A DNA stretch of 63,927 nt, filler included, from Olpidium bornovanus S191 (taxonomy: Eukaryota; Fungi; Olpidiomycota), in assembly GCA_017911155.1 (NCBI GenBank). It is 30 parts of 30 records of this genome, joined end to end, with 100 filler letters (N's around TTAATTAATTAA, not from the genome) between each part and the next. Parts side by side here need not be neighbours in the genome. Positions count along the whole stretch, not along the records: positions 1 to 2,558 come from JAEFCI010007951.1; 29 more parts are not named here. One strand, 5' to 3'. Both the position numbers and the translations under genes were made by a program. The notes under the pieces were generated by a model that had not been told where the DNA came from, made no database searches, and worked only from the letters and a program-made list of their open reading frames with translations. Shown in pieces: positions 1-2,558 of the stretch. Within the stretch, counting starts at the first letter, position 1. Each line of letters starts with the position of its first letter.

Positions 1-787
1 CTATGCTTCGATGCAAGCAACGATATATTCAATCCCCGCGTAAAAAAAGTGCCGTCCAGTACTCTCCGGGACTTTCACCTCGGAGTGTGACGTGAACAGC
101 GGCGGGCAGTTCCTTCCATGCCATTTTGTGCAGGTCGTATCTCTAGAACCGGGGGCCGATTTTGAGGGGATATGCCAATGTGCCAACACTGCCGGTCATG
201 GCTGGCAAACCCGATACATGGCAAGGAACGACTGTCACCGGGGTCAACGTGGCGCTGGTAAGAAGCAGGTGGCATCCCGGGAAGAGTTTGGACGTCCTGC
301 TGGGATTGAAGCCAAAAGTTTTCCTGGCAAGGGCCCCCTAACTGCGCAAGCCAAACGGGAAGGTGCTTTTTTCGTCTGCAGCGGTACTTCAGGATTTGAT
401 GACGGCATGGAATCCTGTGTCCTGCCCGGCTGATAATTCCTGTCGTCACCGTGGATGTTGTCTTGATCCGACATGGAAAAAGACGGTACGCCTTTAACGG
501 CCACGGGGATTAGCCAGTGAGACGCAGAGGCGGTCCCCGGAGCCAGCATTAATGTGACGAAAGCGGCGGACTGGCGGCCCCTAGAGTGGAGCCCGACTTC
601 CGTACATGCGTGCAATCAGGAAACGGTCGCTTCGGGAACCGGGGTTCCTCGACCGCGCTCTCGGTCATGGGAAAAGGGCGGGGACGGGGGGCGTTCCCTG
701 GCGCCTTTTGTGCGCTGCGAATCACAGAAATCTCGAACGGCCGGAGCAACCCAGACCGCAGGCCCCGTGAGCCGACAAAGCAAACGG

Positions 788-2558
788 ATGGAAGCCGAAC
801 GTCAGACGCCGCCGGCGACCGCGCCAAACTCGCTGTGCGCCGTCTCGTCCTCCTCCTCTCCCGCGGTTCCTGAACCAAGCCAGTTGCGCGTCAGCCCATG
901 GTCCGGTTTCCACAAGAAGCCCCTCGGTGTGCGCCGTAAGCAGCTAGCGGCGGCGTTTCCCCATCTGTTCCTCCCGCCGCGGCACGGCCTGCAACCAACG
1001 CCGCCGCGGACTGCGGAATTTGCGAACCCGAGGTCCGTGAGGGGAAATGCCACCGAAACAGCCCGCCAGAGGCACGATCGTCCGGACAGTGCGTTTTTCC
1101 CGCGAAACGCGACGAAAGAACGGCACACACCGACGCGCCTCGTCCTCCGCGTTTACCTCACAGTTGCCAGGTGCGACAGGCCGGCGGCGGCGTTAAATGC
1201 CAGAGCGGACGCCACGAACCTGTTGCCGTAGCCGGGGAACCCGGAAATGCCCAGCTGAACGACGACGATTTCCCGATCCGAGGGCTGGACATCCGAATCG
1301 CAGATATCATGGTGGAGAACTGCATTGGGTGCGTCGTTCCGGCCACCCGACGACCTTTGTGACGCCGGACGCCCTTTGGGAAACCGTCCCGAGTTTATTC
1401 CTTTGGTGCGAACGATTTATTCTGACGCGTTTTGTCCGGTTTGCCCGTCGAAAAAAGGACCGTTGGTTTACCGGTCGGGTTGGCGCTGAATTTTGTCATC
1501 AACGGGAAAGCAAGGATCATCCCTATGGCCATTGAAGAGCCGTCAGTGGTTGCTGCTGTTTCGGGTGCAGCGAAGACGATCTGCGGCGGGGTCAATGACG
1601 GGCAGGGCTTCCGCGCCGTCGCGAAGGAACGCAACCTCGCCACCGCCCAGGTTCTTCTGCTTGATCTGGACGGGTCCGCGATAGCAAGGGCCTTGGATAA
1701 GGTGGGGACGCCGATGCGTTCCTTGGATCGGACCCGGTGGCGATCGACTATATTGCAGGCACCGTCCTGATGGCCTCCGATCGACATTCGGCCCACTTGT
1801 CAGTTAAAGGAAAGCTCGGACGAGGTTATCCGACGGGCTAACGCACTCATCCCAAGCATGGTGGCACGCGGGGGCGGGGTCACGGACATCGAAGTGCGCC
1901 GCGTACAGCGTCCGCTCCGAAGGGAAGGGTCGCGACTGTTGGCGAAGCGTGCGGCGGCGCCGGACGAAGCGAGGGTTGAGTGGCTCGTGGTGCACTTGCA
2001 CGTCGACGTGTGCGAAGCGATGGGCGCAAACTGCGTGACCGCCGTCGCGGAAGGCATTGCGCCGCTTCTGTGCTCGCTAACAGGCGCAAGAGCTGGACCG
2101 AGGATCGTGTCGAACTTGAGCACCGAGAGGATGACGAAAGTAGGGAAAGACCAAGAAATTATAGGTGTGGGGGAAGGCGACCGAGGAGCCCTTCTGCCAG
2201 ATACATCAAAGGCCACTCGCTCCTTTTTTTTTCTTTGTTTCTTTTCTTTTTTCGGCCCCCCGACGCCCCTTCTTGGCGGCTTCCAGTTTTTGACATCGAC
2301 CAGGCGTCCTTCCGCCTCCCCGTGCCGATGCTAGCCTACAAGTCGATCCCGGGCCCTGAAATTGCCCGGAGGATCATCGAAGCGTATGAATGGGCAGAAT
2401 TTGACCCGTTCCGCGCCGCGACGCACAACAAGGGGGTCATGAACGGCGTGGAGGCCGTGGCCGTCGCCACCGGGCAGGACTGGAGGGCGATCTCTGCCGC
2501 GGCCCACGCGTGGGCCTCCCTGAACGACCACCGCGGCGACAGGGGTGGCGGCGAGGGC
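788..2558 (+). CDS. mvaA: Class II (prokaryote-type) HMG-CoA reductase, spliced, 3' truncated by gap
   Basis: Exons encode WSGFHKKPL, IADIMVENCIG, LPVGLALNFVINGKARIIPMAIEEPSVVAAVSGAAK, VDVCEAMGANCV, RIVSNL and DPFRAATHNKGVMNGVEAVAVATGQDWRA, all class II HMGR motifs. They are separated by GT-AG introns (about 1330-1458, 1701-1803, 2141-2303). Start ATG at 788 is a best guess. Confidence 0.92.

Follow-up and report, generated by a model that had tools for sequence, protein, structure and literature searches.

An expressed, intron-bearing class II HMG-CoA reductase gene in Olpidium bornovanus belongs to an old and widespread eukaryotic family

A stretch of 63,927 nucleotides (nt) of DNA from the fungus Olpidium bornovanus S191, 30 parts of its genome assembly joined end to end and called the window here, contains a locus at positions 788-2558 that encodes a protein resembling bacterial HMG-CoA reductase (HMGR; HMG, 3-hydroxy-3-methylglutaryl). 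The locus is very probably the 5' portion of a nuclear gene that is expressed and encodes a soluble class II HMGR; it covers 415 codons in five exons. The sequence stops at position 2558, about 170 residues short of the end of the HMGR domain. The gene is one more ortholog of a known eukaryotic family, which is annotated in more than 100 eukaryotic genomes and yet little known.

An earlier inspection of the DNA by itself (the sequence-only reading) had assigned the protein to class II rather than class I. In all searches, as well as in the tree described below, the exon translations were used singly and not joined. Exons 3, 4 and 5 match the Pfam family PF00368 with E values of 1.8e-15, 1.4e-11 and 6.1e-17, respectively. 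They also match the class II model NCBIfam TIGR00532 (E values 5.5e-12, 1.5e-15 and 5.5e-17; profile positions 74-307 of 395), whose cutoff of 259.95 bits applies to whole proteins, while the exons were scored one at a time. Among solved structures, all good matches are class II enzymes (6dio, 1qax, 5wpj, 3qae, 6p7k, 9v7y and 7m3h), with E values down to 4.3e-20. In contrast, the sole class I chain matched, 8ecg, reaches an E value of 0.59, and the sole class I model listed, TIGR00920, reaches 0.067 with one exon only. The class II assignment is thus borne out by the model matches of three exons and by the gap between class II and class I structures.

The class II motifs ENCIG, EEPSVVAA, EAMGAN, HNKG and GQDWRA are all present across the introns, in the frames that the sequence-only reading had implied. 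More specifically, the translated open stretches carry, in order, WSGFHKK...AFPHLF; DDDFPIRGLDIRIADIMVENCIG; TVGLPVGLALNF...EEPSVVAA; ANALIPSMVARGGG...EAMGAN; and ASFRLP...HNKG...GQDWRA. In alignments with the bacterial enzymes 6dio and 1qax, the Glu in EEPS, the Lys in HNKG and the Asp in GQDW coincide with the catalytic residues, and the corresponding motifs (EEPS, HNKG and G[NQ]DWRA) are kept in 111-113 of 114 family members. Likewise as claimed before, neither Pfam nor inspection of the translation revealed a membrane, sterol-sensing or hydrophobic N-terminal domain in the translated N-terminus. This region consists of 81 residues followed by a linker rich in Ser, Pro and Gly, and exons 1 and 2 have no Pfam match. 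Residues 36-63 of exon 1 form a motif with 50-64% identity to the homologues (family consensus WSGFYKKAL.ERQNQL.LAFP.LF), after which a variable linker begins.

The exon-intron structure is supported by assembled contigs of two sequencing runs, X1 and X2, which come from two studies and skip exactly four GT..AG introns within the coding sequence (Table 1). A single X2 contig of 2228 nt (depth 31; rec10) bears all four joints; it starts at about position 699 and continues for 893 nt beyond position 2558. The ATG at position 788 is the first in this contig, 89 nt from its start. The spliced frame is unbroken (245+165+244+336+255 = 1245 nt) and is open only once the four introns are skipped. X1 additionally contains unspliced contigs over introns 1 and 3, one of which spans positions 1003-1191, as expected of RNA with some precursor. 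In a search of public runs, 20 runs in 10 studies contained the stretch or part of it; six of these, all from one and the same organism, contained at least half of its words, which is the share expected of spliced RNA.

Table 1. Parts of the class II HMGR gene of O. bornovanus, in positions of the window, and examples of the C-terminal extension in related loci and proteins, in positions of those records.
Feature	Position	Strand	Basis and remarks
5' untranslated region	699..787	+	Contigs X1 rec1 and X2 rec10 begin at 700 and 699; no ATG between 699 and 788
Exon 1: ATG, N-terminal motif WSGFHKK...AFPHLF, start of variable linker	788..1032	+	Ends in phase 2; joint 1032/1164
Intron 1, 131 nt, GT..AG, phase 2, in variable linker	1033..1163	+	Absent from spliced contigs of X1 and X2
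Exon 2: linker, then DDDFPIRGLDIRIADIMVENCI(G), ending in ENCIG	1164..1328	+	Translation and contig joints
Intron 2, 129 nt, GT..AG, phase 2, interrupts the Gly codon of ENCIG (1328/1458)	1329..1457	+	Contigs
Exon 3: HMG-CoA-binding region, EEPSVVAA (catalytic Glu)	1458..1701	+	PF00368, TIGR00532; aligned to 9v7y and 6dio
Intron 3, 102 nt, GT..AG, phase 0	1702..1803	+	Contigs
Exon 4: cofactor helix ANALIPSMVARGGG, variable loop, EAMGAN nucleotide-binding motif	1804..2139	+	PF00368, TIGR00532
Intron 4, 164 nt, GT..AG, phase 0, pyrimidine-rich tract	2140..2303	+	Contigs
Exon 5, cut at 2558: HNKG (catalytic Lys), GQDWRA (catalytic Asp)	2304..2558	+	PF00368, TIGR00532; 6dio E 4.3e-20
Locus with the C-terminal extension, Capsaspora	L002:3600-5794		Alignment A2, model m75da75495ae1
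Locus with the C-terminal extension, Batrachochytrium	L003:3500-5272		Alignment A2, model m75da75495ae1
C-terminal extension, protein	P0251:434-792		Alignment A2, model m75da75495ae1

The introns had been taken earlier as an argument against bacterial contamination. They are indeed real and spliced, and the locus is therefore part of a eukaryotic nuclear gene. A contaminant of the assembly, or alternatively a dead and unexpressed relic, could be suspected from the bacterial type of the protein and from two raw RNA runs, X21 and X24, that returned 0 reads. Against this stand the four spliced GT..AG introns, the frame that is intact across five exons only after splicing, the transcript contigs from two studies and the conserved catalytic residues, which leave this explanation a negligible probability.

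The contigs of X1 and X2 both differ from the assembly at four positions (869 C>T, 928 T>C, 1203 G>A and 1235 G>A). The RNA that was sequenced therefore derives from a strain or allele slightly unlike that of the assembly.

To place this expressed nuclear gene among its relatives, we drew on exhaustive and word-based protein searches. The exhaustive search with exon 4 found 531 proteins at E <= 0.001, many of the best being 750-1340 residues long. The best named matches belong to early-diverging fungi, namely Endogone, Chytridiales, Fimicolochytrium, Entophlyctis, Polyrhizophydium, Allomyces and Sorochytrium. With the Endogone protein as query, a word search gave 6391 matches, 120 of which were listed. 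The fungi among these 120 include Jimgerdemannia, Funneliformis, Gigaspora, Paraglomus, Entrophospora, dozens of Mortierellomycota, many chytrids (both Batrachochytrium species among them), Neocallimastix, Anaeromyces, Catenaria, Blastocladiella, Gonapodya and Caulochytrium. Non-fungal relatives among the same listed matches include Capsaspora, Corallochytrium, Sphaerothecum, the nucleariid Parvularia and Arcella. Further look-ups added Nolandella, Copromyxa and Paraphysoderma to the family. As a whole, the family extends over the majority of early-diverging fungal phyla, unicellular holozoans, a nucleariid and Amoebozoa, with members in Endogonales, Glomeromycota, Mortierellomycota, many chytrids, Neocallimastigomycota, Blastocladiomycota, Capsaspora and Corallochytrium. 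The closest relatives listed share 50-70% identity per exon and about 58-60% overall, and the nearest proteins include those of Endogone, Funneliformis, Gigaspora, Entophlyctis, Sorochytrium, Allomyces, Mortierella, Neocallimastix, Batrachochytrium, Capsaspora, Corallochytrium, Parvularia and Arcella. The protein of O. bornovanus itself is not among the listed matches, given these identities, and an exact look-up of the 158-residue genomic open reading frame at 1858-2331 matched no record. No relative turned up when metagenomes were scanned with exon 5.

A maximum-likelihood tree was computed from 35 named eukaryotic and 15 prokaryotic proteins trimmed to the HMGR domain, with exons 3, 4 and 5 as separate rows. 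The prokaryotic rows include Dolosigranulum, a myxobacterium, Teredinibacter and a Poseidoniaceae archaeon. Eukaryotes and prokaryotes are separated by a branch of length 0.76 with 100/100 support, and all three exons fall on the eukaryotic side, in this tree as well as in quick trees. On the eukaryotic side, the branching runs approximately from Amoebozoa through Holozoa to the fungi, which stand together with the nucleariid. Eight rows, one with a very long branch and seven unnamed metagenomic fragments, were omitted from the final tree.

These seven metagenomic or Logan proteins of 380-445 residues (P0143, P0051, P0128, P0142, P0075, P0086 and P0107) lay inside the eukaryotic clade in the first tree; they were dropped as sequences of uncertain origin and should not be taken for bacterial sisters of the family. 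At least one of them has a eukaryotic cluster mate of 999 residues, and they look like fragments of eukaryotic genes that were called as prokaryotic open reading frames. A further protein, P0243 (877 residues), is labelled Schistocerca gregaria and groups with the Amoebozoa Arcella, Nolandella and Copromyxa at 100/99 support, which suggests an amoebozoan contaminant or a transfer in the locust assembly.

The age of the family was also assessed from intron positions. Loci from the genomes of eight relatives (Endogone, Funneliformis, Lobosporangium, Batrachochytrium, Neocallimastix, Catenaria, Allomyces and Capsaspora) were compared after mapping their annotated proteins back onto the DNA and placing them in a common alignment with the O. 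bornovanus exons. Intron 2, which lies in phase 2 within the Gly of ENCIG, is shared in column and phase with all eight relatives. Intron 3 (phase 0) is shared with six of the eight, including Capsaspora, and intron 4 (phase 0, before ASFR) with five. Intron 1, located in the poorly alignable linker, has no clear counterpart among the eight. Another intron, LAM|I in phase 0, is common to six of the eight relatives and falls downstream of position 2558; a fifth intron is accordingly predicted in the O. bornovanus gene, about 110-150 codons past that position. Because positions and phases are common to fungi and Capsaspora, the gene carried these introns already before fungi and holozoans split.

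These comparisons also bear on a recent or lineage-specific horizontal transfer from bacteria, in which O. bornovanus would hold a newly domesticated and unusual enzyme. The prokaryotic type of the family would fit such a transfer, as would reviews that still confine class II enzymes to bacteria and archaea. However, the matches listed contain orthologs from more than 100 eukaryotic species that belong to many phyla, the eukaryotic proteins form one clade against the prokaryotes at 100/100, and three intron positions are common to distant fungi, two of them also to Capsaspora, so that we consider a recent event very improbable. Contamination, a pseudogene and recent transfer were all rejected. 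We instead favor a single, much earlier origin of the eukaryotic family from prokaryotic class II enzymes, which would have been followed by vertical inheritance reaching back to the shared ancestor of fungi and holozoans or further.

The picture of an old, acquired and domesticated enzyme drawn from the sequence alone is therefore kept in part: an old acquisition is consistent with the data, but the gene is not peculiar to this organism, given the widespread orthologs and their 100/100 clade. The implied rarity of class II HMGR in fungi does not hold either, as orthologs are widespread in early-diverging fungi and beyond, form one clade and share three intron positions. Nor is the finding new in itself. 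Its novelty had been made to depend on orthologs not proving widespread and vertically inherited, which is what they appear to be, and the family has been in print since 2016 (PMC4784904).

Exon 4 contains the cofactor helix, which reads I-P-S-M-V-A-R, with Ser at position 3, Arg at position 7 and no Asp of the NADH motif. According to published cofactor rules, (H/Y)xSxxxR denotes NADPH and Dx(V/L)xxxL denotes NADH (Miller and Kung, via PMC13370337). The likeness to the NADPH type that had been pointed out before was confirmed in so far as the Ser and Arg are present and the Asp is absent. Across 98 members of the eukaryotic family, position 1 of the helix is Cys or Val (mostly Cys) and position 3 is Asn or Ser (mostly Asn), with Met4 and Arg7 invariant. 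Because the helix keeps the NADPH-type Ser and Arg and lacks the NADH Asp, and because Met4 and Arg7 are invariant in the family, we lean slightly toward an enzyme that would prefer NADPH or accept both cofactors.

Two further features of exon 4 had been singled out in the sequence-only reading, namely EAMGAN in place of the canonical DAMGAN and an insertion of about 25 residues after DIEVRRV. The insertion exists, with a size of about 18-19 residues rather than 25 relative to the bacterial enzymes (residues 35-54 of the query against two residues of 1qax; 107 residues against 88 positions of the TIGR00532 profile). Neither feature is special to O. bornovanus. The length of this loop varies across all eukaryotic relatives, and EAMGAN is found in five of the 98 family members as well as in the bacterial enzyme of Dolosigranulum, whose helix is YPSIVKR.

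The same helix is relevant to the direction of the reaction. In a degradative role, as in Pseudomonas mevalonii, mevalonate would be oxidised to HMG-CoA with NAD+ and would feed HMG-CoA lyase instead of isoprenoid synthesis. TIGR00532 and many database names indeed call the family 'degradative', the reaction can run in either direction, and a further HMGR for biosynthesis may look superfluous. This label, however, is inherited from one characterised bacterial enzyme, and the helix lacks the NADH motif Dx(V/L)xxxL while having the Ser and Arg of the NADPH motif. We therefore regard a degradative function as quite unlikely.

The mechanism by which HMG-CoA is reduced to mevalonate is established for bacterial class II enzymes. 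By homology with the solved class II structures, the O. bornovanus protein would carry out this biosynthetic reaction via mevaldyl-CoA and mevaldehyde, using two NAD(P)H in two hydride transfers, and would function as a dimer-based enzyme. It may act in the cytosol, independent of membranes and insensitive to statins, and supply mevalonate beside a class I HMGR.

Several points weigh against the assignment of an expressed and active biosynthetic class II HMGR. The catalytic His (GHMxLH) and the C-terminal flap domain lie downstream of position 2558, outside the sequence read. In the tree, the exons, as separate short rows, sit among fungi and the nucleariid with weak and mutually inconsistent neighbours (Endogonales, Parvularia and Gonapodya). 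The run type of X1 and X2 is RNA by guess, the spliced contigs themselves being the evidence of complementary DNA; the empty result from X21 and X24, which carry the same species label, counts as no test. Position 1 of the cofactor helix is Ile, where the NADPH motif has His or Tyr. Furthermore, the presence of a class I HMGR in the organism is assumed, and the literature searched contained no assay of any eukaryotic family member, so that activity, direction and cofactor are inferences.

Many relatives of the gene are considerably longer than a class II HMGR domain. A conserved C-terminal extension of about 300-500 residues is found in 70 of the 126 family proteins with at least 650 residues, and it has no match in Pfam. 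A single exon contains the extension together with the end of the HMGR domain in Batrachochytrium, Capsaspora, Neocallimastix and Allomyces, and the extension is also found within single open frames of transcriptome assemblies of amoebae. Because of the shared exon in four relatives and the single frames in amoebae, the fusion is considered real.

To characterize the extension, the Arcella domain was modelled with AlphaFold2 from a 44-sequence alignment, resulting in a predicted local distance difference test (pLDDT) score of 89.5 and a predicted template modelling (pTM) score of 0.89. The best Foldseek matches, with weak E values, are class I terpene synthases and trans-prenyltransferases, plus one N-prenyltransferase (9m1w). 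An exhaustive structural search gave Z scores of 18.2 to 13.6 over 231-283 residues, and its 50 best entries are again class I terpene synthases and trans-prenyltransferases, along with one N-prenyltransferase of the same fold. As modelled, the C-terminal domain is assigned the alpha fold of class I terpene synthases and prenyltransferases. The canonical DDxxD motif is absent from it, and its conserved polar residues are R92, N94, K100, K102, S105, N109, Q202, R231, Q233, D241, E266, E268, H273, D274, R280, D281, N288 and Y349. A fold search of the ESM Atlas with the domain model returned only TM-scores of 0.30 or less, and scores in the ESM Atlas feature search stayed below 0.9 and serve as leads only.

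The extension is absent from the aligned members of Endogone, Funneliformis (Glomeromycota), Mortierella alpina (Mortierellomycota) and Catenaria. It is probably also absent from the O. bornovanus gene, because the transcript contig leaves at most about 297 codons beyond position 2558 and the remainder of the HMGR domain needs about 170. The gene is thus probably of the short form, like the Endogone and Glomeromycota proteins. Nevertheless, the family could be ancestrally two-domain and undescribed as such, with the HMGR fused in one exon to a domain of this fold. If the O. bornovanus gene had the domain too, past position 2558, or if its short form acted with a copy encoded separately, the HMGR could be isoprenoid-diphosphate-sensing or isoprenoid-producing; we consider this proposal unlikely. 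Were it true, early-diverging fungi might obtain most of their mevalonate from this enzyme, in a statin-insensitive way. The literature searched contained no report of an HMGR-terpene synthase fusion. With its predicted fold, the fusion is a candidate bridge that would join the mevalonate pathway's first committed step to what the pathway produces.

In addition to the HMGR transcript, other transcribed sequences were observed in the first part of the window. A 901-nt X2 contig with a depth of 108, more than three times that of the HMGR contig, ends on positions 1-116, and a neighbouring, more strongly expressed gene thus abuts this piece upstream. Between positions 230 and 469, upstream of the start of the HMGR transcript, X2 contigs of low depth (2-3) contain an extra GT..AG joint that skips about 257-361; this may represent a minor transcript from upstream or an isoform with a longer 5' end. 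Rfam gave no match in this piece, and the G+C content of positions 1-2558 is 52-68%.

Recent reviews describe class II HMGR as confined to bacteria and archaea, a textbook statement that the eukaryotic family contradicts. The gene itself is of small importance. Greater weight falls on the family, whose role next to class I, cofactor use and response to statins are relevant to isoprenoid engineering and to antifungal measures directed at chytrids such as Batrachochytrium. Conaco et al. 2016 (PMC4784904) described class II HMGR besides class I in demosponges, both classes in Capsaspora and class II genes in some fungi, and proposed a transfer into the opisthokont ancestor. Our results agree with theirs and extend the range to Amoebozoa.

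Class I HMGR (fungal Hmg1/Hmg2 and human HMGCR) has the same reaction and belongs to the same Pfam superfamily, PF00368. Unlike these enzymes, the O. bornovanus protein has no membrane or sterol-sensing domain, and class I models and structures barely match it. The class II enzymes from Pseudomonas mevalonii (1qax) and of the Delftia/Burkholderia type (6dio) are likewise soluble, and their fold-defining motifs and catalytic Glu, Lys and Asp match it position by position in the alignments. These two are NADH-specific with an Asp-containing helix, whereas the O. bornovanus helix is IPSMVAR, and the fungal gene adds the N-terminal motif and linker, the loop insertion of 18-19 residues and the introns. 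With the NADPH-preferring enzymes of the Streptococcus pneumoniae (5wpj), Enterococcus faecalis and Staphylococcus aureus type (YPSIVKR), it has Ser3 and Arg7 in common. In contrast to that type, position 1 is Ile here and Cys in most of the family, not His or Tyr, position 3 is mostly Asn in the family, and the bacterial enzymes fall outside the eukaryotic clade. The class II HMGR of Capsaspora owczarzaki (P0030) lies on the same side of the 100/100 branch and shares the N-terminal and catalytic motifs as well as two introns with the O. bornovanus gene. At about 52% identity, the Capsaspora protein comprises 1050 residues including the C-terminal domain with its predicted terpene-synthase fold, whereas the O. 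bornovanus gene probably represents the short form.

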